Assembly (NCBI GenBank): GCA_038087875.1
Contig: JAXLNO010004250.1
Span: 62,001-126,000 of the forward strand
Direction: 5' to 3'
Source: Malacoraja senta
Lineage: Eukaryota
Length of the DNA stretch: 64,000 nt
The notes under the pieces are model-generated. The model was not told the DNA's origin. It was given only the letters and a program-made list of their open reading frames with translations, and did not search any database. Position numbers and translations under genes: made by a program. Shown one piece after another: positions 13,216 through 50,584 of the stretch (positions are counted from its first letter, which is position 1; each line of letters begins with the position of its first letter).

Positions 13216-13519
13216 TACGGTTACTAGACTAAGGGGGACCCGTTGGGTCCCATGTTCACACGGGAGGGCTGGTCCCCCGACGCAATATTCCACCCCTCCA
13301 CCAATTCGAATATTGGTGGCCAGTGGGGGGGGGGGGCTTTCTGGAGCGCTAGTATGGGTGTTGTTGGCTGCAGGGACTACTGGTCTCCAGAGGGCTAGTA
13401 TGGACATTGTGGGCCAAATAGATTCTTGGGGTGGCAGCTCAGTCCCTCAAGCCTGATGTGCTGGCAGCTCACTCACGGCTGGTGGGCTGGCAGTTGACTC
13501 GCAGCTATTCCTTGAAATT

Positions 13520-14395
13520 CCATTTCAAGCAGAGCGCAAGGCCACCAAATTCAAATCCATTTTACTACCATTTCAAGCAGGGTGCAAGGCCACCAAATAC
13601 AAGTGCAGTTTCTTACCTCTTCGAGCAGGGTGCAAGGCCACAAAATTCAAGTGCTGTTTCATACCACTTCAAGCAGGGTGCAAGGCCACCAAATTCAGGT
13701 TCAGTTTCCTACCACTTCAAGCAGGGTGCAAGGCCACCGAATTCAAGTGCAGTTTCCACCACTTCAAGCAGGGTGCAAGGCCACCAAATTCAAGTGCAGT
13801 TTCATACCACTTCAAGCAGGCTGCAAGGCCACCAAATTCAAGTGCAGTTTCATACCATTCAAGGAGGGTGCAAGGCCACCAAATTCAAATGCAGTTTCAT
13901 ACCATTTCATGCAGGGTGCAACAACACCACATTCAAATGCAGTTTCATACCATTTCATGCAGGGTGCAAGGCCACCAAATACAAGTGCAGTTTCTTACCT
14001 CTTCGAGCAGGGTGCAAGGCCACAAAATTCAAGTGCTGTTTCATACCACTTCAAGCAGGGTGCAAGGCCACCAAATTCAGGTTCAGTTTCCTACCACTTC
14101 AAGCAGGGTGCAAGGCCACCGAATTCAAGTGCAGTTTCCACCACTTCAAGCAGGGTGCAAGGCCACCAAATTCAAGTGCAGTTTCATACCACTTCAAGCA
14201 GGCTGCAAGGCCACCAAATTCAAGTGCAGTTTCATACCATTCAAGGAGGGTGCAAGGCCACCAAATTCAAATGCAGTTTCATACCATTTCATGCAGGGTG
14301 CAACAACACCACATTCAAATGCAGTTTCATACCATTTCATGCAGGGTGCAAGGCCACCACATTCAAATGCAGTTTCATACCATTTCAAGCAAGGT
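13520..14395 (+). repeat. 47/48-bp minisatellite (about 18 units) with a 382-bp duplication
   Basis: Unit ggtgcaaggccaccaaattcaagtgcagtttcataccacttcaagcag. The variant caccaaatacaagtgcagtttcttacctcttcgag occurs at 13591 and 13973. Confidence 0.95.
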
Positions 14396-14399
14396 GAAA

Positions 14400-14765
14400 C
14401 CACCATAAAACCACACAAAACACCACACTCACGGTTCATTAGACATTCAGTGTGTTCAGTTGATTCACAGCTCAGACAGTTGTGACCTCTCTCTTCCCCA
14501 TCATGCAGAGACTGAGCCACACCCACACTTCCGGGTTTTATAATCCCTACCCTTCAACCGGAAAAGGTGTGGCCTTCTTGGCGTGATTGACAGGAGAGAG
14601 ATTTTCAACATTTTTAAAACACTAATAACACTTATTTTTCATTGATGGGAAAAATCCTCTGCACTTGATCAGCGGAGGGGGACTGAGTAAGATGGGCAAA
14701 AATCACAGCCGTAAGTGGTAGCGTTTTACCTAAAATCAATATAGTGCAAACAGGAAGTTGTCAAG
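14400..14765 (-). mobile_element. Internal second Helitron 5' module lacking the terminal TC segment
   Basis: Homologous to 23620-23987 and 46366-46710 (acttacggc..., gatgaaaaat..., ctgagctgtgaat...aacygtgagtg). Confidence 0.75.
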
Positions 14766-14769
14766 TTTA

Positions 14770-17700
14770 GACAAACAACCCTTTGCAGCGCCTTTTCACT
14801 TCAACCCAAAACCCCCACAAACAACCATGTGTAGTGCATTTTTACTTCAACCCAAAAACAAACAAACAACCATTTGCAGTGCAATTTTACTTCAACCCAA
14901 ACAACCATTTGCACTGCATTTTTACTTCAACCCAAACAACCATTTGCAGTGCATTTTTACTTCAACCCAAACAAGCCTTTGCAGTGCATTTTTACTTCAA
15001 CCCAAACAACCCTTTGCAGTGCATTTTTACTTCAACCCAATAACCACAAAGAACCATTTGCAGTGCATTTTTACTTCAACCCCAAAAAAAACGAGACAAC
15101 CATTTGCAGTGCATTTTTACTTCAACCCAAACAACCTTTGCAGTGCATTTTTACTTCAACCCAAACAACCCTTTGCAGTGCAATTTTACTTCAACCCAAA
15201 AACCCGCCCAAACAACCATCTGCAGTGCATTTGTATTTCAACACAAAAACACGCCCAAACAACCATTTGCCGTGCATTTTTACTTCAACCCCACCCCCCC
15301 CCAAACAACCATTTGCAGTGCATTTTTACTTCAACCCAAACCCCTCCCCAACAACCATTTGCAGTGCATTTTTACTTCAACCCAAATCCCCCCCCCAAAC
15401 AACCATTTGCAAAACATTTTTACTTCAACCCAAACAACCATTTGCAGTGCATTTTTACTTCAACCCAAACGCCCCCAAACAACCATTTGCAGTGCATTTT
15501 TACTTCTACCCAAACCCCCCCAAACAACCATTTGCAGTGCATTTTTACTTCAACCCAAAGCCCCCCCAAACAACCATTTGCAGTGCATTTTTACTTCAAC
15601 CCAAACATCCATTTGTGTGCATTTTTACTTCAACCCAAACAAACATTTGCAGTGCATTTTTCCTTCAACCCAAAACTCCCTCCAAACAACCATTTGCAGT
15701 GCATTGTTATTTCAACCCAAACAACCATTTGCAGTGCATTTTTACTTCAACCCAAACAACCATTTGCAGTGCAATTTAACTTCAACCCAAACAACCATTT
15801 GCAGTGCATTTTTACTTCAACCCAAACAACCCATTGCAGTGCATTTTTACTTCAACCCAATAACTCCCAAACAACCATTTGCAGTGCATTTTTACTTCAA
15901 CCCAAACTCCCCCCCCCGAAACAACCATTCGCATTGCCTTTTTACTTCAACCCAAACCCCCCCAAACAACCATTTGCAGAGCATTTTTACTTCAACCCAA
16001 ACCCCCCCCAAACAACCATTTGCAGTGCATGTTTACTTCAACCCAAACCCCCCCCAAACATCCATTTGCAGTGCATTTTTACTTCAACCCCAAACCACCC
16101 CCAAACAACCATTTGCAGTGCGTTTTTACTTCAACCCTAACGACCATTTGCAGTGCATATTTCCTTCAACCCAAAACCCCTCCCAAACAACCATTTGCAG
16201 TGCATTTGTACTTCAACCCAAACAACCATTTGCAGTGCATTTATACTTCAATACAAACAACCCATTGCAGTGCATTTTTACTTCAACCCAATAACCCCAA
16301 ACAACCATTTGCAGTGCATTTTTACTTCAACCCGACCCCCCCCCCAACAACCATTCGCATTGCCTTTTTACTTCAACCTAAACCTCCCCAAACAACCATT
16401 TGCAGTGCATTTTTACTTCAACCCAAACAACCATTTGTAGTGCATTTTTACTTCAACCCAAACAACCATTTGCAGTGTATTTTTACTTCGACCCAAGCAA
16501 CCATTTGCAGTGCATTTTTACTTCAACCCAAACAACCATTTGTAGTGCATTTTTACTTCAACCCAAACAACCATTTGCAGTGCATTTTTACTTCAACCCA
16601 AAAACCCGCCCAGACAACCATTTGCAGTGCATTTTTACTTCAACCCAAACAACCATTTGCACTGCATTTTTACTTCAACCCAAACAACCATTTGCGGTGC
16701 ATTTTTACTTCAACCCAAACAACCCTTTGCAGTGCATTTTTACTTCAACCCAATAACCCCCAAACAACCATTTGCAGTGCATTTTTACTTCAACCCAAAA
16801 ACTCCCCAAACAACCATTTCCATTGCCTTTTTATTGCAACCCAACCTCCCCCCCAAACAACTATTTGCAGTGCATTTTTACTTCAACCCCAAAACCCGCC
16901 CAAACAAACATTTGCAGTGCATTTTTACTTCAACTCAACCATTGGCAGTGCATTTTTACTTCAACCCACCCCCCCCAACCAACCATTGGCAGTGCATTTT
17001 TACTTCAACCCAAACCCCCACCCCAAACAACCATTTGCAGTGCATTTTACTTCAACCCAAACATCCATTTGCAGTGCAATTTTACTTGCATCCAAACAAC
17101 CATTTGCAGTGAATTTTTACTTCAACCCAAACAACCATTTGCAGTGCATTTTTACTTCAAACCAAACAACCATTTGCAGTGCATTTTTACTTCAACCCAA
17201 AAACCAAATCAAACAACCATTTCCAGTGCATTTTTACTTCAACCCAAACAACCATTTGCAGTGCATTTTTACTTCAACCCAAAAACCAACCCAAACATCC
17301 ATTTGCAGTGCATTTTTACTTCAACCCAAACAACCATTTACAGTGCATTTTTACTTCAACCCAAACAACCCTTTGCAGTGCATTTTTACTTCAACCCAAT
17401 AACCTACAAAGAACTATTTGCAGTGCATTTTTACTTCAACCCAAAAAAAACCCAAACAAACATTTGCATTGCCTTTTTATTTCAACCCACCCCCCCCCCA
17501 AACAACCATTTGCAGTGCATTTTTACTTCAACCCAAAAACCCGCCCAAACAACCATCTGCAGTGCATTTTTATTTCAACACAAAAACACGCCCAAACAAC
17601 CATTTGCCGTGCATTTTTACTTCAACCCCACCCCCCCCCAAACAACCATTTGCAGTGCATTTTTACTTCAACCCAAACCCCTCCCCAACAACCATTTGCA

Positions 17701-20700
17701 GTGCATTTTTACTTCAACCCAAATCCCCCCCCCAAACAACCATTTGCAAACCATTTTTACTTTAACCCAAACAACCATTTGCAGTGCATTTTTACTTCAA
17801 CCCAAACGCCCCCAAACAACCATTTGCAGTGCATTTTTACTTCTACCCAAAACCCCCCCAAACAACCATTTGCAGTGCATGTTTACTTCAACCCAAAGAA
17901 CCATTTGCAGTGAATTTTTACTTCAACCCAAACAACCCTTTGCAGTGCAATTTTACCTCAACCCAAAAACCCGCCCAACCATTTGCAGTGCATTTTTATT
18001 TCAACACAAAAACACGCCCAAACAACCATTTGTAGTGCATTTTTACTTCAACCCCAATCCCCCCCCAAACAACCATTTGCAGTGCATTTTTAATTCAAAC
18101 CAAACCCCCCCCCAACAACCATTTGCAGTGCATATTTACTTCAACCCAAACCCTCCCCCAAACAACCATTTGCAAAGCATTTTTAATTCAACCCAAACAA
18201 CTATTTGCAGTGCATTTTTACTTCAACCCAAACCCTCCCCAAACAACCATTTGCAGTGCATTTTTACTTCAACCCAAACCCCCCCCAAACAACCATTTGC
18301 AGTGCATTTTTACTTCAACCCAAACAACCATTTGCAGTGCATTTTTACTTCAACCCAAACAACCATTTGCAGTGCATTTCTACTTCAACCCAAGCAACCA
18401 TTTGCAGTGCATTTTTACTTCAACCCAAACAACCATTTGTAGTGCATTTTTACTTCAACCCAAACAACCATTTGCAGTGCATTTTTAATTCAACCCAAAA
18501 ACCCGCCCAAACAACCATTTGCAGTGCATTTTTACTTCAACCCAACCCCCCCCCCAACAACCATTTGCAGTGCATTTTTACTTCAACCCAAATCCCCCCC
18601 CCAAACAACCATTTGCAAAACATTTTTACTTCAACCCAAACAACCATTTGCAGTGCATTTTTACTTCAACCCAAACGCCCCCAAACAACCATTTGCAGTG
18701 CATTTTTACTTCTACCCAAACCCCCCCAAACAACCATTTGCAGTGCATTTTTACTTCAACCCAAAGCCCCCCCAAACAACCATTTGCAGTGCATTTTTAC
18801 TTCAACCCAAACATCCATTTGTGTGCATTTTTACTTCAACCCAAACAAACATTTGCAGTGCATTTTTCCTTCAACCCAAAACTCCCTCCAAACAACCATT
18901 TGCAGTGCATTGTTATTTCAACCCAAACAACCATTTGCAGTGCATTTTTACTTCAACCCAAACAACCATTTGCAGTGCAATTTAACTTCAACCCAAACAA
19001 CCATTTGCAGTGCATTTTTACTTCAACCCAAACAACCCATTGCAGTGCATTTTTACTTCAACCCAATAACTCCCAAACAACCATTTGCAGTGCATTTTTA
19101 CTTCAACCCAAACTCCCCCCCCCGAAACAACCATTCGCATTGCCTTTTTACTTCAACCCAAACCCCCCCCAAACAACCATTTGCAGAGCATTTTTACTTC
19201 AACCCAAACCCCCCCCAAACAACCATTTGCAGTGCATGTTTACTTCAACCCAAACCCCCCCCCAAACATCCATTTGCAGTGCATTTTTACTTCAACCCCA
19301 AACCACCCCCAAACAACCATTTGCAGTGCGTTTTTACTTCAACCCTAACGACCATTTGCAGTGCATATTTCCTTCAACCCAAAACCCCTCCCAAACAACC
19401 ATTTGCAGTGCATTTGTACTTCAACCCAAACAACCATTTGCAGTGCATTTATACTTCAATACAAACAACCCATTGCAGTGCATTTTTACTTCAACCCAAT
19501 AACCCCAAACAACCATTTGCAGTGCATTTTTACTTCAACCCGACCCCCCCCCCAACAACCATTCGCATTGCCTTTTTACTTCAACCTAAACCTCCCCAAA
19601 CAACCATTTGCAGTGCATTTTTACTTCAACCCAAACAACCATTTGTAGTGCATTTTTACTTCAACCCAAACAACCATTTGCAGTGTATTTTTACTTCGAC
19701 CCAAGCAACCATTTGCAGTGCATTTTTACTTCAACCCAAACAACCATTTGTAGTGCATTTTTACTTCAACCCAAACAACCATTTGCAGTGCATTTTTACT
19801 TCAACCCAAAAACCCGCCCAGACAACCATTTGCAGTGCATTTTTACTTCAACCCAAACAACCATTTGCACTGCATTTTTACTTCAACCCAAACAACCATT
19901 TGCGGTGCATTTTTACTTCAACCCAAACAACCCTTTGCAGTGCATTTTTACTTCAACCCAATAACCCCCAAACAACCATTTGCAGTGCATTTTTACTTCA
20001 ACCCAAAAACTCCCCAAACAACCATTTCCATTGCCTTTTTATTGCAACCCAACCTCCCCCCCAAACAACTATTTGCAGTGCATTTTTACTTCAACCCCAA
20101 AACCCGCCCAAACAAACATTTGCAGTGCATTTTTACTTCAACTCAACCATTGGCAGTGCATTTTTACTTCAACCCACCCCCCCCAACCAACCATTGGCAG
20201 TGCATTTTTACTTCAACCCAAACCCCCACCCCAAACAACCATTTGCAGTGCATTTTACTTCAACCCAAACATCCATTTGCAGTGCAATTTTACTTGCATC
20301 CAAACAACCATTTGCAGTGAATTTTTACTTCAACCCAAACAACCATTTGCAGTGCATTTTTACTTCAAACCAAACAACCATTTGCAGTGCATTTTACTTC
20401 AACCCAAAAACCAAATCAAACAACCATTTCCAGTGCATTTTTACTTCAACCCAAACAACCATTTGCAGTGCATTTTTACTTCAACCCAAAAACCAACCCA
20501 AACATCCATTTGCAGTGCATTTTTACTTCAACCCAAACAACCATTTACAGTGCATTTTTACTTCAACCCAAACAACCCTTTGCAGTGCATTTTTACTTCA
20601 ACCCAATAACCTACAAAGAACTATTTGCAGTGCATTTTTACTTCAACCCAAAAAAAACCCAAACAAACATTTGCATTGCCTTTTTATTTCAACCCACCCC

Positions 20701-23610
20701 CCCCAAACCACCATTTGCAGTGCATTTTTACTTCAACCCAAAAACCCGCCCAAACAACCATCTGCAGTGCATTTTTATTTCAACACAAAAACACGCCCAA
20801 ACAACCATTTGCCGTGCATTTTTACTTCAACCCCACCCCCCCCCCAAACAACCATTTGCAGTGCATTTTTACTTCAACCCAAACCCCTCCCCAACAACCA
20901 TTTGCAGTGCATTTTTACTTCAACCCAAATCCCCCCCCCAAACAACCATTTGCAAACCATTTTTACTTTAACCCAAACAACCATTTGCAGTGCATTTTTA
21001 CTTCAACCCAAACGCCCCCAAACAACCATTTGCAGTGCATTTTTACTTCTACCCAAAACCCCCCCAAACAACCATTTGCAGTGCATGTTTACTTCAACCC
21101 AAAGAACCATTTGCAGTGAATTTTTACTTCAACCCAAACAACCCTTTGCAGTGCAATTTTACCTCAACCCAAAAACCCGCCCAACCATTTGCAGTGCATT
21201 TTTATTTCAACACAAAAACACGCCCAAACAACCATTTGTAGTGCATTTTTACTTCAACCCCAATCCCCCCCCAAACAACCATTTGCAGTGCATTTTTAAT
21301 TCAAACCAAACCCCCCCCCCAACAACCATTTGCAGTGCATATTTACTTCAACCCAAACCCTCCCCCAAACAACCATTTGCAAAGCATTTTTAATTCAACC
21401 CAAACAACTATTTGCAGTGCATTTTTACTTCAACCCAAACCCTCCCCAAACAACCATTTGCAGTGCATTTTTACTTCAACCCAAACCCCCCCAAACAACC
21501 ATTTGCAGTGCATTTTTACTTCAACCCAAACAACCATTTGCAGTGCATTTTTACTTCAACCCAAACAACCATTTGCAGTGCATTTTTACTTCAACCCAAG
21601 CAACCATTTGCAGTGCATTTTTACTTCAACCCAAACAACCATTTGTAGTGCATTTTTACTTCAACCCAAACAACCATTTGCAGTGCATTTTTAATTCAAC
21701 CCAAAAACCCGCCCAAACAACCATTTGCAGTGCATTTTTACTTCAACCCAACCCCCCCCCCCAACAACCATTTGCAGTGCATTTTTACTTCAACCCAAAC
21801 CCTCCCCCAAACAACCATTTGCAAAGCATTTTTACTTCAACCCAAACAACTATTTGCAGTGCATTTTTACTTCAACCCAAACCCTCCCCAAACAACCATT
21901 TGCAGTGCATTTTTACTTCAACCCAAACTCCCCCCCAAACAACCATTTGCAGTGCATTTTTACTTCAACCCAAACAACCATTTGCAGTGCATTTTTACTT
22001 CAACCCAAAGAACCATTTGCAGTGCATTTTTACTTCAACCCAAGCAACCATTTGCAGTGCATTTTTACTTCAACCCAACCCCCCCAAACAACCATTTGAA
22101 GTGCATTTTTACTTCAAACCAACCCCAACCCCCCAATCAACCATTTGCAGTGCATTTTTACTTTAACCCAAACCCCCCCCAAACATCCATTTGCAGTGCA
22201 TTTTTACTTCAACCCCAAACCACCCCAAACAACCATTTGCAGTGCATTTTTATTTCAACCCTAACGACCATTTGCAGTGCATTTTTCCTTCAACCCAAAA
22301 CCCCTCCCAAACAACCATTTGCAGTGCATTTGTACTTCAACCCAAACAACCATTTGCAGTGCATTTATACTTCAACACAAACAACCCATTGCAGTGCATT
22401 TTTACTTCAACCCAATAACCCCAAACAACCATTTGCAGTGCATTTTTACTTCAACCCAAACAACCATTTGCAGTGCATTTTTACTTCAACCCAAACAACC
22501 ATTTGCAATGCATTTTTACTTCAACCCAAGCAACCATTTGCAGTGCAATTTTACTTCAACCCAAACAACCATTTGTAGTGCATTTTTACTTCAACCCAAA
22601 CAACCATTTGCAGTGCATTTTTACTTCAACCCAAAAACCCGCCCAAACAACCATTTGCAGTGCATTTTTACTTCAACCCAAACAACCATTTGCACTGCAT
22701 TTTTACTTCAACCCAAACAACCCTTTGCAGTGCATTTTTACTTCAACCCAATAACCACCAAACAACCATTTGTAGTGCATTTTTACTTCAACCCAAAAAA
22801 AACCCAAACAACCATTTGCAGTGCATTTTTACTTCAACCCAAGCAACCATTTGCAGTGCATTTTTACTTCAACCCAAACAACCATTTGTAGTGCATTTTT
22901 ACTTCAACCCAAACAACCATTTGCAGTGCATTTTTACTTCAACCCAAAAACCCGCCTAAACAACCATTTGCAGTGCATTTTTACTTCAACCCAAACAACC
23001 ATTTGCACTGCATTTTTACTTCAACCCAAACAACCATTTGCGGTGCATTTTTACTTCAACCCAAACAACCCTTTGCAGTGCATTTTTACTTCAACCCAAT
23101 AACCCCCAAACAACCATTTGCAGTGCATTTTTACTTCAACCCAATAACCCCCAAACAACCATTTGCAGTGCATTTTTACTTCAACCCAAACAACCATTTG
23201 CAGTGCATATTTACTTCAACCCAAACAGCCATTTGCAGTGCAATTTTACTTCAACCCAAACAACCCTTTGCAGTGCATTTTTACTTCAAACCAAAAACCC
23301 GCCCAAACAATCATTTGCAGTACATTTTTACTTCAACCCAATAACCCCCCCCCAAACCAACCATTGGCAGTGCATTTTTACTTCAACCCAATAACCCCCA
23401 AACAACCATTTGCAGTGCATTTTTGCTTCAACCCAAAAACTCCCCAAACAACCATTTCCATTGCCTTTTTATTGCAACCCATATTTACTTCAAACCAAAC
23501 AACCATTTGCAGTGCATTTTTACTTCAATCCAAACAACCATTGGCAGTGCATTTTTACTTCAACCCAAACAACCATTTGCAGTGTATTTTTACTTCAAAC
23601 CAACCATATT
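14770..23610 (+). repeat. 35-bp satellite array (about 8.8 kb, more than 200 units) with a 3.2-kb higher-order duplication
   Basis: Unit aaacaaccatttgcagtgcatttttacttcaaccc with variable C-rich inserts. Rare variants recur at offsets of 3206-3208 bp. Confidence 0.97.
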
Positions 23611-23987
23611 TTCATTTTCAAACAACATTAAGGGCACTCACAGTTGAGTAAGACATGTGTTCAGGGTTATTCAGAGCTCAGAGAGACGCGACGCGACGTG
23701 ACCCTCTGGCGTCCTCCATCTTGCAGAGACTGAGCGAGGCACACCACTTCCTGGTTTTATAGTCCCTCCCGCTCCCTGCAGCAGGGGCAGCAGAGAGAAC
23801 GCCGATTTAAAAAAAAATTAATATCTCTCTGATTTTTCATCGATGGGAAAAATCCTCTGGTCCAGGAAGGCGAAGGGGGGCTCTGGGTGAGGTGGTAAAA
23901 AATAACGGCCGTAGGTGGCGGCGTTCTCTCGGAAATCACACCACAGTGAGCTAAAAGCAGTCAAGATCAGACTTTTAGTAATATAGA

Positions 23988-27290: not shown

Positions 27291-27826
27291 AAATTATGTC
27301 AGGCGTTGTGAAAGATGGAGGATGTTGGTTTAAAAGTGATTTAACTAGCATGTGCAACATAGGTTTTTCAGTATATGGAATTTCGTTGCTGTGTAACAAA
27401 ATGATTTCCTTAGGATCTTTATGGCATGCATCGATTTCAAAGTTGAATACTATTCAGGTCTCATTCAGAGATCCCAGGAGACATTTGGAATTTTTCTGGA
27501 TGGGGCAATGATAACAGTTAATGCGTTGCAAATGGGCTAACTTCAGCTCCCAGGTCATCTACCAAATTACTAAACTGCTTACAGCTCAAAAACACTTGTT
27601 ATGGCTGAACTAAATGATATTCTAAACGCTGTGTTTTGCTAAAATCAACTGTTTCAGCCACAACTATATTTGAGAAATTGAGGTTTCCTCCAGTTAAATT
27701 TAAGTTGATACCAACTAGTTTGATTATTTGGTTTTACCTTTAACTATTAATTATCTGTGACTCCGCCCTGGGGCAAGAGATTGGAATCAATAGAAGCATG
27801 TAACAAACTTGTTATCAAGCAGTCTT

Positions 27827-28378
27827 AACCATATAACCATTACAGCACGGAAACAGGCCATCTCGGCCCTTCAAGTCCATGCCGAACATTTTTTTTATTA
27901 AAAAAAAAAAAAAATACTTCCCCCTAGTCCCATCTACCTGCACTCAGACCATAACCCTCCATTCCTTTCCCGTCCATATACCCATCCAATCTATTTTTAA
28001 AGGATAAAATCGAACCAGCCTCCACCACTTCCACTGGAAGCTCATTCCACACAGCTACCACTCTCTGAGTAAAGAGGTTCCCCTTAATGTTACCCCTAAA
28101 CTTCTGTCCCTTAATTCTCAAGTCATGTCCCCTTGTTTGACTCTTCCCTACTCTCAATGGAAAAAGCTTATCCATGTCAACTCTGTCTAACCCGCTCATA
28201 ATTTTAAAGACCTCTATCAAGTCCCCTCTTAACCTTCTGCGCTCCAAAGAATAAAGACCTAGCTTGTTAAACCTTTCTCTGTAACTTAGTTGCTGAAACC
28301 CAGGCAACATTCTAGTAAATCTCCTCTGTACTCTCTATTTTGTTGACATTCTTCCTATAATTAGGCGACCAAAATTGT
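27827..28378 (-). mobile_element. CR1 family B 3' fragment nested in DIRS
   Basis: ORF 27924-28310 matches the C-terminus of ORF 37283-38668. Tail aaccatataacc. Confidence 0.92.
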
Positions 28379-31504: not shown

Positions 31505-31682
31505 NNNNNNNNNNNNNNNNNNNNNNNNNNNNNNNNNNNNNNNNNNNNNNNNNNNNNNNNNNNNNNNNNNNNNNNNNNNNNNNNNNNNNNNNNNNNNNNN
31601 NNNNNNNNNNNNNNNNNNNNNNNNNNNNNNNNNNNNNNNNNNNNNNNNNNNNNNNNNNNNNNNNNNNNNNNNNNNNNNNNNN
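31505..31682. other. Assembly gap (178 N) next to a (TA/TG)n microsatellite
   Basis: Run of N. Confidence 1.
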
Positions 31683-32789: not shown

Positions 32790-33138
32790 ACCCGCTGAGT
32801 TACTCCAGCACTCTGTGAAACGTCAACTATCCATGTTCTCCACAAATGCTGCCTGACCCGCTGAATTACTCCAGCACCCTGTGAAACGTCACCTATCCAT
32901 GTTCTCCACAGATGCTGCCTGACCTGCTGAGTCACTCCAGCACTCTGTGAAACTTCACCTATCCATGTTCTCCACAGATGCTGCCTGACCCGCTGAGTTA
33001 CTGCAGCACTCTGAAACGTCACCTATCCATGTTCTCCACAGATGCTGCCTCACCCGCTGAGTTACTCCAGCACTCTGTGAAACGTCACCTATCCATGTTC
33101 TCCACAGATGCTGCCTGACCCGTTGAGTTACTCCAGCA
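32790..33138 (+). repeat. Second 66-bp Penelope-derived tandem array (about 5 units)
   Basis: Same unit as 7722-8198. Confidence 0.92.
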
Positions 33139-33859
33139 CTGATTTCCTTGGGATCGTCTCTCCCAACTGGGTGACACAGTGCAAGGTCCCCAGTAGACAT
33201 TCTTTCAACGGGGAAACAGGCCCTTCGGCCCACCTCATCCATACCGACCACGATGCCCCATCTACTCTTGTCCCACCTGCCCGCATTTGGCCCATATCCC
33301 TCTGAACCTTTCCCATCCATGTACCTGCCTGTTTTTTTTTAAATATTGGTATATTTCGACTGCTGCCTGCCCTGTCCGACCAGCCGAGTTTTGTGTCCAT
33401 GTTCTCCCCGCAGTACCGGCTGCCAGCAGCAGGTGGGGGTGCTGCACCGTCAAACTGTACTGAGCTCTGGACAGCTCGTCATCACCATTTCCTGGTTGGA
33501 AGCGGCATTACAACTGTCCCGGACTGTGAACTGAAAGTCCCATTGTAGATCATTAGATAGGAACAGAATTAATCATTCGGCCCATTAAGTCTGCTCCGCT
33601 ATTCCATCTTCGCTGATCTGCGTATCCATCCCAACCCCATTCGCCTGCCTTTGACACCCTTACTAATCTACAGATGCGCCGCAGAAAGCATTTAATCGGT
33701 GGGAAGGAACTGCAGATGCTGGTATACACCGAAGATAGACACAAAATGCTGGAGTAACTCAACGGGACTGGCAGCATCTCTGGAGAGAAGGAATGGGTGA
33801 CGTTTCGGGACGAGACCCTTCTTCAAACTCGGGATGGACCACAGCGTAAAATTGCAGAG

Positions 33860-38300: not shown

Positions 38301-38767
38301 AACTAAGTTACAGAGAAAGGTTGAACAAGTTAGGTCTTTATTCTTTGGAGCGCAGAAGGTTAAGAGGGGACTTGATAGACGTCTTTAAAATTATGAGCGG
38401 GTTAGACAGAGTGGACGTGGATAAGCTTTTCCCATTGAGAGTAGGGAAGATTCAAACAAGGGGACATGACTTGAGAATTAAGGGACAGAAGTTTAGGGGG
38501 AACATTAGGGGGAACTTCTTTACTCAGAGAGTGGTAGCTGTGTGGAATGAGCTTCCAGTGGAAGTGGTGGAGGCAGGTTCGATGTTATCCTTTAAAAATA
38601 GATTGGATGGGTATATGGACGGGAAAGGAATGGAGGGTTATGGTCTGAGTGCAGGTAGATGGGACTAGGGGGAAGTATTTATTTTTAATTTTAAAAAAAA
38701 TGTTCGGCACGGACTTGAAGGGCCGAGATGGCCTGTTTCCGTGCTGTTATGGTTATATGGTTATATG
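35350..38767 (+). mobile_element. CR1 family B, near full length (ORF1 SGNH-esterase part, APE, RT), with frameshifts and stops
   Basis: VVVHIGTND (35392-35826), CVYFNARSI/GDFNFP (APE), 461-aa RT ORF 37283-38668, tail ttatggttatatggttatatg. Confidence 0.96.
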
Positions 38768-40208: not shown

Positions 40209-40510
40209 TTGAGTAGTGAAGTAAGTTAGTCTTTGAAATTGAGGTTGGTACAGTATAATCCCCTTATCGTGAGAGTACTTGTAGATACTTATAGTAGATA
40301 AGACAGTCTTGATTTAAATTAAGGCTCTCGGACGGGTAATCTCAATATCATCACACGCAGACTCACACACACCCTCACTCGCACACCACGCATGCACTCA
40401 GACGCTCACGCACATGCCCGCACGCAAAGGCATACACACGCACATGCGAACACACACACGCACACATTCACACGCACACGCACGCACACACACGTAAACT
40501 AAGATCTTAC

Positions 40511-40537
40511 CTTGGTGGCTACATATCCTTTTCCACT
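40511..40537 (-). CDS. 27-nt micro-exon of the BTN-like gene ((E)WKRICSHQ)
   Basis: ttgtttgtttctgttttcag|AGTGGAAAAGGATATGTAGCCACCAAG|gtaaga. Phase 1-1, in frame with the B30.2 exon. Confidence 0.82.
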
Positions 40538-40729
40538 CTGAAAACAGAAACAAACAAGACTGATATGAAGAAAACTCTCTGGAATGTAATCTGATTAATT
40601 TCATAGCAAGAAGCTCCTGATGGACCCACTGCAGTTTCACAACATGCTGTCCATAGGTGATAATGTTGCTGCAAGTGACTGAGGTTGCATCTGTCTGCGC
40701 ATGTGTGTGTACTGCACACGTTTGACATG

Positions 40730-41123
40730 GTTATTCTCTCTCTCCCTCTTCCTGTCTGTCTCTGTCTGTCTTCCCACCAACCCTCTCTTTCTCACTCTTC
40801 CCTCTCTCTCTCTCTCTACTCCCTCTCCCACCCTCTCTCTCTCTCTCTTCCTGTGTCTCTGTCTCTGTCTATGTCTCTCTTCCCACCAACCCTCTCTTTC
40901 TCACTATTCCCTCTCTCTCTCTTTCCCACCCTCTCTCTCTCTCTCTTCCTGTCTGTCTCTGTCTCTGTCTCTCTTCCCACCAACCCTCTCTTTCTCAATC
41001 TTCCCTCTCCTTTTCTCCCTCTCCCACCCTCTCTCTCTCTTCCCACCAACCCTCTCTCTTTCTCAATCTTCCCTCTCCCTCTCTCTCCTTTTCTCCCTCT
41101 CCCACCCTCTCTCTCTCCTTCTC

Positions 41124-41159
<36 letters not shown>

Positions 41160-41160
41160 G
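40730..41160. repeat. CT-rich microsatellite/minisatellite
   Basis: (ct)n with recurring ttcccaccaaccctctct. Confidence 0.95.
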
Positions 41161-41793
41161 AATTTCAGTGTGGCGTTCGACAAGGTTCCGCATGGTAGGC
41201 CGCTCTGGAAAGTTAGATCGTACGGGATCCAATGAGAAATAGCCGAGTGGATAGAAAATTGGCTCCATGGATAAAAGCAGAGGGTGATGGTGGAAGGTTG
41301 CTTCTCGGACTGGAGGCCTGTTACTAATGGTGTGCTTCAGGGTTCGGTGCTGGGCCCGTTACTGTTTGTCATCTACATCAATGATTTGGATCAGAAGATA
41401 CATGGCAAAAATAGCTGATGATACAAAAGTGGATGGTTTTGCAGATAGTGAAGATGGATGCGAAAATTTGCAGCAGGATATGGATTGATTGGCCAAGTGG
41501 GCTGAGGATTGGTGGATGTAATTTAATACAGAGAAATCTGAGGTGTTGCATTTTGGGTAGTCTAACATGGGCAGGACATACACAGTGAATGGTAGTGCTC
41601 TGGTGAGTGTTGTGTTGAATCTCCTCAGTCTCCTAAGCAAGTAGAGACATTGGGTGTCATCTTGGCTGTTGCTTCATTGTACTTGGTCCACAACAGATCA
41701 CTTGGAATATTAACACCGGGATACATGAGGCTCTCACCCACTTCTACTTCGGCACCATTGATGCTGATTGGGGCTTGTACACCATCGGCATTC

Positions 41794-44700
41794 ATAGAAA
41801 CATAGAAAATAGGTGCAGGAGTAGGCCATTCGGCCCTTCGAGCCTGCACCGCCATTCAATATGATCATGGCTGATCATCCAACTCAGTATCCTGTACCTG
41901 CTTTCTCTCCATACCCCCTGATCCCTTTAGCCACAAGGGCCACATCTAACTCCCTCTTAAATATAGCCAATGAACTGGCCTCAACTACCTTCTGCGGCAG
42001 AAAATTCCAGAGATTCACCACTCTCTGTTTGAAAAATGTTTTCCGCATCTCGGTCCTAAAAGATTTCCCCCTTATCCTTAAACTGTGACCCCTTGTTCTG
42101 GACTTCCCCAACATCGGGAACAATCTTCCTGCATCTAGCCTGTCCAACCCCTTAAGAATTTTGTACGTTTCTATAAGATGCCCCCTCAATCTTCTAAATT
42201 CTAGCGAGTACAAACCGAGTCTATCCAGTCTTTCTTCATATGAAAGTCCTGACATCCCAGGAATCAGTCTGGTGAACCTTCTCTGTACTCCCTCTATGGC
42301 AAGAATGTCTTTCCTCAGATTAGGAGACCAAAACTGTACGCAATACTCCAGGTGTGGTCTCACCAAGACCCTGTACAACTGCAGTAGAACCTCCCTGCTC
42401 CTATACTCAAATCCTTTTGCTATGAATGCTAACATACCATTCGCCTTCTTCACTGCCTGCTGCACCTGCATGCCTACTTTTAATGACTGGTGTACCATGA
42501 CACCCAGGTCTCGTTGCATCTCCCCTTTTCCTAATCGGCCACCATTCAGATAATAGTCTACTTTCCTGTTTTTGCCACCAAAGTGGATAACCTCACATTT
42601 ATCCACATTATACTGCATCTGCCATGCATTTGCCCACTCACCCAGCCTATCCAAGTCACCTTGCAGCCTCCGAGCATCCTCCTCACAGCTAACACTGCCC
42701 CCCAGCTTCGTGTCATCCGCAAACTTGGAGATGTTGCATTCAATTCCCTCGTCCAAATCATTAATATATATCGTAAATAGCTGGGGTCCCAGCACTGAGC
42801 CTTGCGGTACTCCACTAGTCACTGCCTGCCATTGTGAAAAGGACCCATTTACTCCTACTCTTTGCTTCCCGTCTGCCAGCCAGTTATCTATCCACATCAT
42901 TACTGAACCCCCAATACCGTGTGCTTTAAGTATGTATACCAATCTCTTATGTGGAACCTTGTCGAAAGCCTTCTGAAAGTCCAGATATAACATATCCACT
43001 GGTTCTCCCTTATCCACTCTACTAGTTACATCCTCGAAAAATTCTATAAGATTCGTCAGACATGATTTACCTTTCATAAATCCATGCTGACTTTGTCCAA
43101 TGATTTCACCACTTTCCAAATGTGCTGCTATCCCATCTTTAATAACTGATTCTAGCAGTTTCCCCACTACCGACGTTAGACTAACTGGTCTGTAATTCCC
43201 CGTTTTCTCTCTCCCTCACTTTTTAAAAAGTGGGGTTACATTAGCTACCCTCCAATCCTCAGGAACTACTCCAGAATCTAAAGAGTTTTGAAAAATTATC
43301 ACTAATGCTTCCACTATTTCTGGGGCTACTTCCTTAAGTACTCTGGGATGCAGCCTATCTGGCCCTGGGGATTTATCGGCCTTTAATCCATTCAATTTGC
43401 CTAACACCACTTCCCGGCTAACCTGGATTTCACTCAGTTCCTCCATCTCATTTGACCCCCGGTCCCCTGCTATTTCCGGCAGATTATTTATGTCTTCCTT
43501 AGTGAAGACAGAACCAAAGTAGTTATTCAATTGGTCTGCCATGTCCTTGTTCCCCATGATCAATCCACCTGTTTCTGACTGCAAGGGACCTACATTTGTT
43601 TTAACTAATCTTTTTCTCTTCACATATCTATAAAAGCTTTTGCAGACAGTTTTTATGTTCCCTGCCAGTTTTCTTTCATAATCTATTTCCCCTTTCCTAA
43701 TTAAGCCCTTTGTCCTCCTCTGCTGGACTCTGAATTTCTCCCAGTCCTCTGGTAGGCTGCTTTTTTCTGGCTAATTTGTACGCTTCATCTTTTGTTTTGA
43801 TACAATTCCTGATTTCCCTTGTTATCCATGGATGCACTACCTTCCCTGATTTATTTTTTTGCCAAACTGGGATGAACAATTGTTGTAGTTCATCCATGCA
43901 GTCTTTAAATGCCTTCCATTGCATATCTACCGGCAACCCATTAAGAATCAATTGCCAGTCTATCTTGGCCAATTCACTTCTCATACCCTCAAAGTTACCT
44001 TTCTTTAAGTTCAGGACCCTTGTTTCTGAATTAACAATGTCACTCTCCATCCTAATGAAGAACTCAACCATATTATGGTCACTCTTGCCCAAGGGGCCAC
44101 GCACAACAAGACTGCTAACTAACCCTTCCTCATTACTCAATACCCAATCTAGAATAGCCTGCTCTCGTTGCTTCCTCTACATGTTGGTTTAGAAAACTAT
44201 CCCGCATACATTCCAAGAAATCCTCTTCCTCAGCACGCTTGCCAATTTGATTCACCCAATATATATGTAGATTGAAGTCACCCATTATAACTGTTTTAGC
44301 TTTGTTGCACGCATTTCTAATTTCCTGTTTGATGCCATCCCCAACTCCACTACTACTGTTAGGTGGCCTGTACACAACTCCCACTAGCGTTTTCTGCCCC
44401 TTAGTGTTTCGCAGCTCTACCCATATCGATTCCACATCCTCCAAGCTAATGTCCTTCCTTTCTATTGCGTTAATCTGCTCTCTAACCAGCAACGCTACCC
44501 CACCTCCTTTCCCTTTCTGTCTATCCTGAATATTGAATATCCCTGGATGTTCAGCTCCCAGCCTTGGTTACCCTGGAGCCATGTCTCCGTGATCCCAACT
44601 ATATCATAGTCATTAATAGCTATCTGCACATTCAACTCATCCACCTTATTACGAATGCTCCTTGCATTGAGACACAAAGCCTTCAGGCTTGTTTTTACAA

Positions 44701-46165
44701 CACTCTAACCCCTTATACAATTATGTTGAAAAGTGGCCCTTTTTGATTTTTGCCCTGGATTTGTCTGCCTGCCACTTTTACTTTTCACCTTGCTACCTAT
44801 TGCTTCTACCCTCATTTTACACCCCGCTGTCTCTACGCTCACACATTTAAGAAACCCTTTCCCTTTAACTCCATCCTCAACTATCCCATTCGACACCCCA
44901 CCCCCCTTATTCAGTTTAAAACCACCCGTGTAGCAGTGGAAAACCTGCCTGCCAGAATGCTGGTCCCCCACCTGTTAAGATGCAATCCGTCCCTTTTGTA
45001 CAGTTCCCTTTTACTCCAAGTGATCTAAGAATCTAAATCCCTGTCCCGTGCACCAGTTCCTCAGCCACACATTCAGGTCCCGTATCTCCCTGTGCCTGCT
45101 CTCGCCAGCACGAGGAACTGGAAGCAAACCGGAGATAACAACCCTAGAGGTCCTGCTTTTCAGCATTTTTCCGAGCTCTCTAAAGTCACGCTGCAGAATA
45201 TTCATCCCCTTCTTTCCGACATCGTTTGTGCCGACATGCACTACCACTTCCGGCTGTTCACCTTCGCCCTTGAGGATTTTCTGCACTCTGTCCGTGACAT
45301 CCTGGATCCTGGCACCAGGAAGGCAGCACACCATCCTCGAATCCCATCTGTTGCCGCAGAAACCCCTGTCCGTACCTCTCACAATGGAGTCTCCCACTAC
45401 AATGGCATTGCCTGACTTTGGCCTTTTTGGTTTTGGCTCAACAGCCCTATTCGCATTGCAAGCCAGTCTGCCGCTCAGTGTTAAAACGTCTTCTGTCCCA
45501 ACAGATTCTAAGTGGGTGAACCTGTTCACAAGAGGTAGAACACCCGGGGACGTTTGCATTCCATGCTTCCCTCCCTTTCTCACTGTCTCCCACCTTCTCT
45601 CTTCCAGTACCTTAGGTGTAACAATCTTACTGTAGGACTTGTCGAGGAACCACTCCGTTTCTCGGACAATCCTGAGGTCATCCACTTGCTTCTCCAGTTC
45701 CCCAACACGGTCCTTCAGGAGCTGTACCTGGATGCACTTGTCACATTTGTAGCAGCCAGAGGCACCAGCAGTGTCCTTGACCTCCCACATACTGCAAGCA
45801 TCACACTGAATCAGCTTGCCTGACATCTCCTTCTTTCGTCTCTCCCTCTGCAGTGTTTTGAGTAGCCTCTTCTCCTCGCCAAAGACTCACACTTTTCTCA
45901 CAGGGCACTTCCGTCATAAGGCCACTCCCTCACTGCCACTCCCTAAGAGCAGTCTTGCTTATATTAACTGATAAATTGCCTAATTTACAATCCAAATTCC
46001 TCAATTTACAACTGTTTTCCCCGCTTTGAGTCACTTCTCTCCTCCCTCTTGAGCTAAAGGCAATCAGTGTTTTCTCTTGCTAATCTTCTCCTGCTGTTGC
46101 TTCCAAATCTACAGCAGCTCTGAGTAAAGTCTGCCTGTGCTTTGCCTCTCCTTTTCAACTTCCTG
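41794..46165 (-). mobile_element. CR1 family A, near full length (5' UTR, ORF1 zinc-finger-like plus SGNH esterase, ORF2 APE-RT broken by frameshifts)
   Basis: ORF 45011-45826 (CDACSMW...CDKC; IVVGDSIVRG; VVVHVGTND). ORF2 pieces 44495-44677 through 41884-43167. Tail catagaaacatag. Confidence 0.96.
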
Positions 46166-46184
46166 AAATTAACTCACAAATACG

Positions 46185-46345
46185 CACATCTTCGGGATGT
46201 GGGAGAAAACCGGAGCACCCGGAGGAAACCCGTCACATGGAGAATATATGCAAACTCTGCACAGACAGCATCCGAGGTCAGGATCGAACCCACGTCTCTG
46301 GCGCTGTGAGATATCAATTCTCCCAGCAGCACCACTGTGTCGCCA
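46185..46345 (-). mobile_element. tRNA-derived SINE fragment
   Basis: ggagaaaaccggagcacccggaggaaaccc...ggtcaggatcgaaccc. Confidence 0.75.
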
Positions 46346-46709
46346 TTCCTTCTCATTTGTGAATATCTATATTACTAAAACTAAGATCTTGACCGCTTTT
46401 GACTTACTGTTTTGTGATTTCCGAGAGAACGCCGCCACTTACGGCCGTCATTTTAGGCCACCTCGCTCAGAGCCCGCCTGGACCGGAGGATTCTTCCCAT
46501 CGATGAAAAATCAGAGAGATATTAATGTTTTAAAATGTTTTGCCATTCTCTCTGCTGCCCCCGCTGTCGGCAGGGGGGAGGAACTATAAAACCGGGAAGT
46601 GTCGCGCCTCAGTCAGTCTTTGCGAGATGGAGGAAGCGAGAGGGTCACGTCTCTCTGAGCTGTGAATAACACTGAACACATGTCTACTCAACTGTGAGTG
46701 CCCTTAATG

Positions 46710-46946
46710 TGGTTCCAAAATGCTTGCAAAAAGTGTCTATTGGTTCTAAAATACTTGCAAAAAGTGTCTATTGGTTCCAAACTGCTTGCAAAACGTGTCT
46801 ATTCGTTCTAAGATGCTTGCAGAGTGTCTATTGGTTCTAAAATGGTTGCAAAAAGTATCTATTGGTTCTAAAGTGCTTGCAAAAAGTGTCTATTGGTTCT
46901 AAAATGCTTGCAAAAAGTGTCTCTATTGGTTCTAAATTGCTTGCAA
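46710..46946 (+). repeat. 31-bp tandem repeat (about 7.5 units)
   Basis: Unit tggttctaaaatgcttgcaaaaagtgtctat. Confidence 0.95.
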
Positions 46947-47084
46947 CAGTTTTCGGAAGGAATAATCGTGAATAAAAGTTTTATTCAATCAGGACTGTTT
47001 AATGCAAAATTGCCGCTCATTCCGTGACTTCCGCTTAGTGGAAAGGTGGCGCTGAGTGCGTCATTTCCACTCAGTGGAGAGGTG

Positions 47085-48600
47085 GTGCTGTGGCTTTTGA
47101 AATGAATGTGGCTTTTGAGGTGTGGCTGTTGAAATAAACGTGGCTATTGAAATAAACGTGGCTGTTGAAATAAACGTGGCTTTTGAAATAAACGTGGCTT
47201 TTGAAAGAAATGTGGCTTTTGAAAGAAATGTGGCTTTTGAGGTGTGGCTTTTGAAATAAATGTGGCTTTTGAAGTAAATGTGGCTTGAAATAAATGTAGC
47301 TTTTGAAATAAATGACTGGCTTTTGAAATGAATGGCTTATGAAATGAATGTGGCTTTTGGACTGAATGTGGCTTTTGGACTGAATGTGGCTTTTGAAATA
47401 AATGTAGCTTTTGAAATAAATGTGGCTTTTGAAATGTGGCTTTTGAAATAAATGTGGCTTTTGAAATAAATGAATGGCTTTTGAAATGAATGGCTTTTGA
47501 AATAAATGTGGCTTTTGGACTGAATGTGGCTTTTGAAATAAATGTGGCTTTTGAAATAAATGTGGCTTTTGAAATAAATGTGGCTTTTGAAATGTGGCTT
47601 TCGAAATAAATGTGGCTTTTGAGGTGTGGCTGTTGAAATAAACGTGGCTGTTGATATAAACGTGGCTTTTGAAATAAACGTGGCTTTTGAGGTGTGGCTT
47701 TTGACATAAATGTGGCTTTTGACATAAATGTGGCTTTTGACATAAATGTGGCTTTTGAAAGAAATGTGGCTTTTGAGGTGTGGCTTTTGAAAGAAATGTG
47801 GCTTTTGAGGTGTGGCTTTTGAAATGAGGCTCTTGAAATAAATGTGGCTTTTGAGGTGTGGCTTTTGAAATAAATATGGCTTTGGAAATGTAGCTTTTGA
47901 AATGTGGCTTTTGAAATAAATGTGGCTTTTGAAATAAATGTAGCTTTTGAAATGTGGCTTTTGAAATAAATGTAGCTTTTGAAATGTGGCTTTTGAAATG
48001 CGGCTTTTGAAAGAAATGTGGCTTTTGAAATAAATGTGACTTTTGAGGTGCGGCTTTTGAGATAAATGTGGCTTTTGAAAGACATGTGGCGTTTGAAATA
48101 AATGTGGCGTTTGAAAGAAATGTGGCTTTTGAAATAAATGTGGCTTTCGAGGTTTTGCTTTTGAAATAAATGTGGCTTTTGAAATGTAGCTTTTGAAATG
48201 TGGCTTTTGAAAGAAATGTGGCTTTTGAAAAGTGTATTTTGAAATAAATGTAGCTTTTGAAACGTGGCTTTTGCAATAAATGTAGCTTTTGAAATGTGGC
48301 TTTTGAAATGAATGTGGCTTGTGAAATGTGGCTTTTGAAAGAAATGTGGCTTTTGAAATGAATGTGGCTTGTGAAATGAATGTGGCGTGAAATGAATGTG
48401 GGTTTTGAAATGTGTGTGGCTTTTGAAATAAACGTGGCTTTTGCAAGAAATGTGGCTTTTGAAATGTGGCTTTTGAAACAAATGTGGCTTTTGCAAGAAA
48501 AGTGGCTTTTGAAATAAATGTAGCTTTTGAAATGTGTCTTTTGAAATAAAGGTGGCTTTTGAAATGTGCCTTTTGCAACACCTGTGCCTTTTGCAACAGC
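47085..48600 (+). repeat. 18/14-bp minisatellite (about 1.5 kb)
   Basis: Units gaaataaatgtggctttt and gaaatgtggctttt. Bracketed by a diverged direct repeat (about 46955-47070 and 48608-48715). Confidence 0.96.
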
Positions 48601-48807
48601 TGTCCCTGGAAGGAATAAACGCTTTATTAGGTCCAACCGTGTTTACTGCAAAAGTCCCGCTCATTTCGTGATTTCCGCTTAGTGGATGGGTCACGCTGAT
48701 TGCGTCATTTCCGGTGAGTACAGAGGTCATGCAGAAGTGTTGCTGACTGCGGAAGGCCCAAAGTGGAGCCGTTTGAGTATTCAAAATTTTTTATTGCCAA
48801 ATATATG

Positions 48808-49268
48808 GTGAGTGTGTGTGTCTGTGTGTCTTTGTGTGTGTGAGTGTATGTGTGTGTCTGTGCATGTGTGTCTGTCTGTGCGTGTGTCTGTGCATGTGTC
48901 TGTCTGAGCGTGCACCTGTCTGTGCGTGCGTATGTGTGAGTGTCTGTGTGAGTGTCTGTGTATGTGTGTGTGTCTGTGTATGAGTGTGTGTATGTGTGAG
49001 TGTCTGTATGTGCGTGTGAGTGTTTGACTGTGTCTCCGTGTATGAGTGTGTCTGTGTGTCTGTATGTGTGTCTGTGAGTGTGTGTCTGTGTGAGTGTCTG
49101 AGTATGTGTGTGAGTGTCTGTGTGAGTGTGTGTACGTGAATGTGAGTGTGTTTCTTTGTGTTTGTGTGTATATCTGTGTGAGTGTGTCTTTGTGTGTGTG
49201 TCTGTCTGTCTGTATGTGTCTGTCTGCATGTGTGTGAGTGTCTTTGGGTGTGTGTGTCTGTGTGTGCA
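48808..49268 (+). repeat. (TG)n-rich compound microsatellite
   Basis: gtgtgtctgtgtgagt-type repeats. Confidence 0.95.
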
Positions 49269-49305
49269 CTCTTCTTGAAATGATGTGAAATTGGATTTGC
49301 TGGCC

Positions 49306-49507
49306 TGCACTTGGAGTGCTGTGAGGTCAGACTTTCTGCTTGCACTCTGCTTGGTGTGCTGTTAGGTTGGACTTGCTGCCTGCACTCTGCTTGGAGTGCT
49401 GTGAGGTTGGACTTGCTGCCTGCACTCTGCTTGGTGTACTGTGAGATTGGACTTGCGGCCTGCACTCTGCTTGGTGTGCTGTGAGGTTGGACATGCAGCC
49501 TGCACTC
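49306..49507 (+). repeat. 40-bp tandem repeat x5
   Basis: tgcactc recurs at 49341, 49381, 49421, 49461 and 49501. Confidence 0.95.
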
Positions 49508-49939
49508 CAGGTTGACTTTTGAGGTAAATTCTCATATTTTCTTTGTTAAAATTTGACTGCTTAATCTCTCTATATTAAAATTTATCTTTTTTTATATCAA
49601 CACCAAAGTGTTATCAAGAGGCAATGAGCAGCAGAACACAGCAAGAGACACAACAAGAAAGAACTTAATAAATCTCATCTTTAACATTTAAATTGTTGTT
49701 ATATTTTAATTCATTCACATTTTAAACTTTAATAAATCCTTTTTCCACTTACCATGCCTGCGTGTTCTTCATCACAATTGTAACCTAATAGGCAGGAATG
49801 GTTGCGCTGTCGGAGAGCCACTAGGAGTGCATGGGGGAGGGGGGGAAGGTTGAGGGGCGATGGACTGAATGTGTGTGGGGGAGGGGAATGGCATGGAGTA
49901 GAGGGGGGGGGGTGAAGCGAGGAGGGGTGACTGAGTGAA

Positions 49940-50090
49940 CTGCCACCACCAGCCGTGAGTGACTGGGCTGCCAGCCCACCAGCCATGAGTAAGTGAACTG
50001 CCAGCCCAACAGCTGTAAGTGACTGAAGTGTCAGCCCACCAGCCATGACTTAGTGAACTGCCAGCCCACCAGCCATGACTCACTGAACTG
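49940..50090 (+). repeat. 30-bp tandem repeat x5
   Basis: Unit gccagcccaccagccatgagtaagtgaact. Confidence 0.9.
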
Positions 50091-50164
50091 CAAGTCCAAA
50101 AATCCATTTAGTCCACAATGTCCATACTAGCCCTCTGGAAACCAGTCCCTTCAGCGCACAACAG

Positions 50165-50357
50165 CCTGAGTGACTGAGCTGCCTGGCCTGAGTGAATGAG
50201 CTGCCTGGCCTGAGTGACTGAGCTGCCTGGCTTGAGTGACTGAGCTGCCTGGCCTGAGTGACTGAGCAGCCTGGCCTGAGTGACTGAGCAGCCTGGCCTG
50301 AGTGACTGAGCAGCCTGGCCTGAGTGACTGAGCAGCCTGGCCTGAGTGACTGAGCTG
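50165..50357 (+). repeat. 22-bp tandem repeat (about 9 units)
   Basis: Unit cctgagtgactgagcagcctgg. Flanked by a duplicated ccacaatgtccatactagccctctg segment (about 50113 and 50379). Confidence 0.95.
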
Positions 50358-50584
50358 CCAGCCCAAGAATCCATTCGGCCCACAATGTCCATACTAGCCC
50401 TCTGAAAACCAGTCCCTTTGACCCACAACACATACTAGTGCTCCAGAAAGCCCCCCCCCCCACACTGGCCAGCAATATTGGAATTGGTGGAGAGGTGGAA
50501 TATTGCTTTGGGGGACCAGCACTCCCGTGTGAAGCTGGGACCCAACGGGTCCCACTTAGTCTAGTTTCAATACTAAATTCTTAC

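Follow-up and report, generated by a model that had tools for sequence, protein, structure and literature searches.

Two Helitrons and their insertion sites

The present analysis deals with a stretch of 64,000 nucleotides of the skate Malacoraja senta (assembly GCA_038087875.1, contig JAXLNO010004250.1, positions 62,001 to 126,000, forward strand), hereafter the window, which holds two non-autonomous canonical Helitrons of one family, with TC and hairpin-CTAG ends, lying between A and T and having no target site duplication. The composite Helitron A (13224-23987, minus strand, 10,764 bp) runs from its 5' tip at 23987 to its 3' hairpin-CTAG at 13224 and consists, in this order, of an outer leader (m1), a 35-mer array, an inner leader (m2), a GT tract, a 48-mer array, 26-30-mer repeats and the 3' module, while Helitron B (46366-50564, plus strand, 4,199 bp) starts with a single leader (m3) and has the same tip and hairpin-CTAG ends with A/T flanks (the slash marks here and below the point of insertion or junction). 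Conserved are the first 345 bp or so, which constitute the leader, and the last 230 bp or so, the interior being almost wholly minisatellite. As regards the material compared, it comprises four leaders, namely m1, m2, m3 and that of an outside contig (L001), together with two 3' ends. L001 belongs to a metagenome-type assembly of the European Nucleotide Archive (ENA), and was the single match of a search with the open reading frame (ORF) of the 5' leader.

The preliminary description had assigned Helitron TC and hairpin-CTAG ends and AT targets to these elements, and both were borne out. A 15-nt 5' tip starting with TC occurs exactly twice in the window, at 23987 (minus) and 46366 (plus), and the 3' signature, consisting of the hairpin, 7 nt and CTAG, also exactly twice, at 13224 (minus) and 50564 (plus), with 0 expected; the ends pair in the right order and orientation, giving A and B, both of which are flanked as A/TC and CTAG/T. 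The CTAG termini, of the CTRR type, lie at 13224-13227 (minus) and 50561-50564 (plus), and the 3' end is 11 nt beyond the hairpin GGGACCC-AAC-GGGTCCC, whose GC stem of 7-8 bp, closed by a 3-nt loop, is the main feature of the single-stranded DNA fold. The 3' modules of A (13224-13453, minus, hairpin at 13235-13251) and B (50339-50564, plus, hairpin at 50537-50553) are 88% identical. Furthermore, L001 has a tip with TC at its position 2727, and the homology of m1, m3 and L001 starts exactly at TC, downstream of three unrelated flanks, each with a final A.

The insertion site of A could be compared with empty ones, since the element is bordered on its 5' side by the terminal part of a dispersed host repeat, two paralogs of which (58965-59172 and 54436-54645) continue across the insertion point (..TTAA/TAAT..) and match the 3' flank of A at 9 of its first 11 nt. 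Relative to these paralogous empty sites, nothing has been duplicated and nothing lost. As the paralogs run through the joined flanks without a break, a single A/T site accommodates the composite of 10.8 kb together with its two leaders; the composite came in as one block or, if not, takes up no more than one site. The flanks of B (...AATA/ and /TTTC) are also without duplication, and no paralogous empty site for B was found within the window. Hence A/T junctions, and not the target site duplications that would have spoken against the original assignment, are found at both elements. Moreover, no 11-mer of the first 40 nt has a reverse complement (with at most 1 mismatch) in the last 400 nt of A or B, and this lack of subterminal inverted repeats classes both as canonical Helitrons and not as Helentrons. 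With respect to the surroundings of A, another repeat family, starting ...ATAACCATATAACCATTACAGCACGG, is found at 13180-13212, 27826-28022 and 38570-38766; it starts 11-15 nt downstream of the 3' end of A, interrupting the host repeat copy in which A lies.

The leaders

The three homologous 5' modules that had been proposed for the window were confirmed. Leader m1 (23625-23987, minus) extends from its TC tip through TATAAAA (23755-23761) and GTGAGTG (23635-23641) to its end at ...CCCTTAATGT; the inner leader m2 (14426-14772, minus) keeps the TATA, initiator (Inr) and GTGAGT motifs and lacks the first ~15 nt of the tip; and m3 (46366-46710, plus) contains TATAAAA at 46585-46591, an Inr-like TCAGTCT at 46613-46619 and GTGAGTG at 46694-46700. 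Between leaders m1 and m3, 86% of the aligned bases agree (81% in BLAST when gaps are counted), and m2 is about 71% identical to both. In terms of Kimura two-parameter (K2P) distance, the closest pair is that of m1 and L001 (0.075), followed by m3 and L001 (0.124) and by m1 and m3 (0.153), while m2 stands at about 0.37 from each of the others.

All four leaders have TATAAAA 29-30 nt upstream of the Inr-like TCAGTCT, share an ETS-like GGAAGTG, and run for roughly 80-90 nt from the Inr-like site to GTGAGT without a long ORF. The block TATAAAACCnGGAAGTG is the best conserved across the four, the diverged m2 included. Judged by these motifs, the leader resembles a portable core promoter for RNA polymerase II (Pol II), with a short non-coding exon behind it that ends in a splice donor, and the box that had been described as shared by the modules is the 3' part of this promoter-like leader. 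In addition, the central part of the leader contains the imperfect palindrome GATTyTTCCCATCGATGAAAAATC (46489-46512 in m3), which is kept in m1, m2, m3 and L001; no compensatory changes were seen in it, so it offers no evidence for a structure.

The minisatellite arrays

The three arrays of 35, 48 and 31 bp reported before were all recovered by Tandem Repeats Finder (TRF). The 35-mer array of A (14772-23624, minus) has about 214 units, the TRF call being 14772-23570 with about 215 units, and falls into two unit-length classes of 35 bp (92 units) and 44-48 bp (107 units), with 8% C on the element strand. It includes a pair of adjacent 3.2-kb blocks (21775-18566 and 18569-15358, minus) that are 99.87% identical, either a very recent tandem duplication by unequal exchange or an assembly artefact. 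Behind m2, a GT-rich tract of 29 bp (14397-14425, minus) leads into the 48-mer array (13520-14396 by TRF, minus), whose 18 units show a 382-bp higher-order period.

Helitron B, all of whose parts are on the plus strand, carries further arrays. The 31-mer array behind m3 (46710-46946 by TRF, 7.6 units) is followed by an 18-mer array (47089-48607, about 88 units) lying between two homologous spacers of about 140 bp (46947-47088 and the start of 48608-48807). These two spacers were considered as possible decayed leaders, and their similarity was not significant, save for one score that is likely due to low complexity. Then come a GT-rich tract (48808-49266), the counterpart of the short GT tract after m2, and a 40-mer array (49284-49507) homologous to the 48-mer of A. 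Closer to the 3' end, the segment 49928-50359 contains arrays of a 30-mer and a 22-mer together with a copy of part of the 3' module (50076-50163), and all three monomers are related to one another. As to base composition, the leader-proximal arrays are strongly C-poor on the sense strand (8-10% C, with G+T at 64-82%) at 14772-23624, 47089-48565 and 48808-49266, and the 3'-proximal arrays are not.

The family also carries its minisatellites about: in L001, at another locus and with a different copy number, the leader is followed by an array of at least 29 units of the 31/33-mer, which is the monomer of B in matching orientation and is 33 bp long there. None of the seven monomers had a match outside A or B anywhere in the 64-kb window, and searches with array ORFs turned up no further arrays. 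Since no array was thus seen outside a Helitron, that the family seeds satellites is something that we can only infer.

A conserved boundary with probably inherited arrays

The preliminary description had regarded the end of the leader as a fixed slot in which one 5' module is followed by three different monomers, two of the modules switching at exactly the same junction. The first part of the junction claim was confirmed, as m1 and m3 are identical through ...GTGAGTGCCCTTAATGT. Nevertheless, past ...CCCTTAATGT the two still match at 9 of 12 positions (xGTTxxAAAATG), which means that the homology runs on and the switch is not sharp. When the first post-junction unit of m1 was compared with the 31-mer by free local alignment, the similarity was not significant, and only the anchored register match of 9/12 holds. 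The kernel said to be common to the three monomers was retained in part. The 35- and 31-mer arrays start in the same phase of an ordered kernel, TGGTT ... TAAAA(A)TGC ... TGCAAA, and their consensus sequences are weakly more similar than shuffled ones (z 2.7-3.1, p 0.02-0.03), but neither the 35- nor the 31-mer is significantly similar to the 48-mer against shuffles, so that a three-way kernel was not sustained. Moreover, the leaders of L001 and m3 are both followed by the 31/33-mer, at the same junction, and since these two bracket m1, the 35-mer is by parsimony derived within a lineage that bore the 31/33-mer, as a replacement or a remodelling of that monomer.

The 48-mer has its relatives elsewhere. 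It is homologous to the 40-mer of B (z 7.4), and the inner element of A is collinear with the 3' half of B over the GT-rich tract, CACyyTnCTTGAAATG..., the 40/48-mer array, the 30-mer family and the 3' module. The array behind m2 thus corresponds to an array that in B lies 2.6 kb downstream of the slot, and with this counterpart outside the slot the proposal that three different monomers share a single slot is not upheld as stated. For the 35- and 31-mers, the same register together with the weak kernel makes inheritance with rapid turnover no worse an explanation of the junction than a slot. We prefer to see in the slot a conserved end of the leader, downstream of which arrays are inherited and change quickly.

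Proposed mechanism and origin of composite A

Taken as a whole, the explanation that we consider probable is that A and B are Helitrons of one family with inherited arrays and fast turnover behind a conserved leader, composite A having arisen by read-through. The mechanism of Helitron transposition is established, and the steps for A and B are those that we infer. Elements would be mobilised in trans by a RepHel protein, with a nick at the 5' TC, strand displacement as far as the 3' hairpin-CTAG terminator and insertion between A and T. Every new copy would take over the arrays of its source copy, and slippage and unequal exchange would then reshape these much faster than the ends diverge; such remodelling is suggested by the drift in monomer length (31 to 33 bp, and 35 to 44-48 bp), the higher-order periods, the duplication of the 3.2-kb block and the growth of one array to 8.8 kb. 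Under this scheme, the common junction would reflect shared descent of leader and array, and not necessarily a site of uptake for foreign arrays, and the 48-mer would be part of another cassette of greater age, represented in B by the 40-mer.

With regard to composite A, its most likely origin would be a transposition that began at the outer leader and, the outer element's own 3' end being missing or bypassed, stopped at the terminator of an older inner element downstream. Given that the 3' hairpin terminator can be bypassed (PMC4778049), such read-through, or use of the first terminator, is the simplest origin. The internal junction is 35-mer/GTCTAAAC, where the last 35-mer unit is joined to GTCTAAACTTGAC of the inner leader m2. 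A deletion between two GTGAGTG repeats was also considered as the source of the inner element and was dropped, as GTGAGTG recurs throughout the GT-rich tract.

Several points weigh against this account. The same recurrence of GTGAGTG within the GT-rich tract means that the motif in the leader may simply mark the start of the tract, and the promoter and splice-donor activity is proposed from motifs only. No intermediates between the 35-mer and the 31/33-mer were found among 214 + 36 units. Furthermore, the 35- and 31-mers resemble each other weakly (p about 0.02), so that an unrelated array may have taken the place of the old one altogether; descent with rapid homogenisation is the alternative that we favour. 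No recognisable m2-type leader is present within B, so a common composite ancestor of A and B lacks support. Finally, the whole argument has as its basis four leaders and two 3' ends only.

Among the alternatives, the strongest is that A is the product of two events, in which an outer element inserted exactly between the host A and the T of the inner TC tip, and a later deletion took away the 3' end of the outer element along with ~15 nt of the tip of the inner one. An A/T target would indeed exist at the boundary between host and inner tip, nothing but the first ~15 nt is missing from the inner leader, and m2 is far more diverged than m1, all of which would fit. This history, however, requires an additional precise deletion and has left no trace of an outer 3' module, and the 3' module of A is as near to that of B (88%) as the outer leaders are to one another; we therefore hold it to be rather improbable, read-through being preferred. 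A true slot, in which the site at the leader end repeatedly acquires unrelated arrays or generates them de novo, for example by rolling-circle template switching, the 35-, 31- and 48-mers being independent, is less likely still. It would account for the leaders of m1 and L001, which are separated by a K2P of 0.075 and yet are followed by distinct monomers without intermediates, and for three leaders breaking at almost one point; moreover, group 2 of the oyster Cg_HINE elements combines related flanks with unrelated repeats (PMC7492417). Nevertheless, the 48-mer is homologous to an array of B lying outside the slot, the 35- and 31-mers share their starting register (9/12 anchored) and an ordered kernel, and no donor-type array was seen outside a Helitron.

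Two further possibilities concern the data and the nature of the elements. Part of the 8.8-kb array could be an assembly artefact, the 3.2-kb near-identical repeat having come from mis-joined reads of a shorter array, as might be thought from two blocks that are 99.87% identical, directly adjacent and different mostly by indels of 1-3 bp. Even so, four substitutions and several indels separate the blocks and the unique parts of the array are continuous on both sides, so that the probability given to an artefact is low, somewhat below that of a true slot. As for a non-transposon origin, the resemblance of the leader to a promoter and first exon might call to mind a segmental duplication that copied a host promoter together with the first exon and a minisatellite-bearing intron; but the homology stops exactly at TC and CTAG between unrelated flanks, and the canonical hairpin, the A/T sites and the paralogous empty site for A make this exceedingly unlikely.

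Relation to known systems

No published description of Helitron families from skates or any other cartilaginous fish was found. In the Pacific oyster, the Cg_HINE Helentrons have conserved flanks round variable arrays resembling satellite DNA, in fixed orientation; related flanks can go with related, divergent or unrelated monomers, and some elements have two consecutive arrays (PMC7492417). The skate elements are like these, and like DINE-1/DINE-TR1 of Drosophila, in their central arrays of fixed orientation between conserved flanks and in the simple-sequence tract that comes before an array (PMC7492417), the resemblance being functional only. Unlike Cg_HINE and DINE-1, which are Helentrons with subterminal inverted repeats, they have TC...hairpin-CTAG ends at A/T sites and no such repeats; their host is a vertebrate, and their left flank is a promoter-like leader, whereas that of Cg_HINE/DINE is made up of a subterminal inverted repeat, an inverted repeat and a microsatellite.

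Among vertebrates, Heli2Xen/Helitron-N2_XT of Xenopus and Helitron-N1_DR of zebrafish consist largely of minisatellites (PMC12001565). Heli2Xen and Helitron-N1_DR share with the skate elements that they are canonical vertebrate Helitrons whose non-autonomous copies are mostly variable minisatellite arrays; compared by description only, the Xenopus and zebrafish elements have a single 166-bp unit, whereas those of the skate have several monomers of 18-48 bp in successive cassettes. For the leader and the composite structure, the closest parallels come from bats. In Helraiser, the 3' hairpin acts as terminator, and its bypass lets transposition end at a downstream terminator (PMC4778049), while HelibatN3 of vespertilionid bats captured the promoter, a short exon and a splice donor of NUBPL and drives chimeric transcripts (PMC4778049, PMC4224331). 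The parallel with HelibatN3 would lie in a promoter, a short first exon and a splice donor between Helitron ends, all three of them candidates in the skate, and in composites that arise by read-through, as proposed for A. Nevertheless, the cargo of HelibatN3 has been traced to a named host gene and its transcripts have been shown, whereas the candidate exon of the skate is non-coding; in addition, the HelibatN3 elements are not array-filled, unlike A and B.

Significance

Helitrons filled with minisatellites are already known from oysters, flies, frogs and zebrafish, and A and B are further members of this class. They constitute a clean, well-bounded vertebrate case of Helitrons carrying and remodelling minisatellites, in which a pair of leaders at a K2P of 0.075 is followed by different monomers at one junction, one array has grown to 8.8 kb, and a two-leader composite fills a single A/T site according to the paralogous empty site. 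Their description aids repeat annotation in the cartilaginous fishes, a little-studied lineage. Moreover, if the leader were an active promoter with a splice donor, its insertions could, as in bats, provide host genes with alternative first exons.

A bolder proposal, to which we give very little credence, is that the leader acts as a portable Pol II promoter with a first exon, from which transcription runs into the G/T-rich arrays (8% C on the sense strand). Instability linked to this transcription, through R-loops for example, or template switching in rolling-circle copying would then create minisatellites and renew them at a fixed point just past the splice donor. Were this true, leader and array would form a self-renewing cassette that multiplies in Helitrons and spreads promoters and proto-satellites through the skate genome.

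Sequence sources and other repeats

An assembly gap (31505-31682, filled with Ns) is found in the host DNA between A and B, outside both elements, 7.5 kb from the 5' end of A and 14.7 kb from that of B; its left edge is a TA/TG microsatellite and its right edge unrelated unique DNA. Each element lies whole within one gap-free block (1-31504 for A and 31683-52123 for B), so the scaffold join affects only the distance and relative orientation of A and B, on neither of which any conclusion draws. A second gap (52124-52310), edged by TA-rich simple repeats (52311-52378), is also outside both.

Searches with ORFs of the 35-mer and its junction, and with those of the 48-mer and m2, gave no match in databases that hold nearly no host non-coding DNA and are thus uninformative on copy number. 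The ORF of the 3' module, searched with HMMER against 1.84 billion representatives, gave three weak matches to very long proteins, which were judged, without being inspected, to be unrelated low-complexity sequences. An Rfam scan of the whole window matched no family, so that leader and arrays contain neither a small-RNA gene nor a ribozyme of a known kind. In L001, about 330 bp separate the 5' end of the Helitron from a pannexin/LRRC8-like ORF (1639-2394, minus); the called gene, of 251 aa, has an in-frame stop, and may be a pseudogene or contain a sequencing error.

Two further repeats were noted in the window. A CT-rich low-complexity tract of about 400 bp (40755-41159), with a higher-order period of 94-98 bp, is unrelated to them. 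A 66-bp unit (CCGCTGAGTTACTCCAGCAC...GATGCTGCCTGAC) forms tandem arrays at 7722-8197, 32790-33140 and 55074-55175 (7.3, 5.3 and about 3 copies, respectively), and looks like a minisatellite from a different dispersed repeat, which would give this genome another way of turning transposons into tandem arrays.

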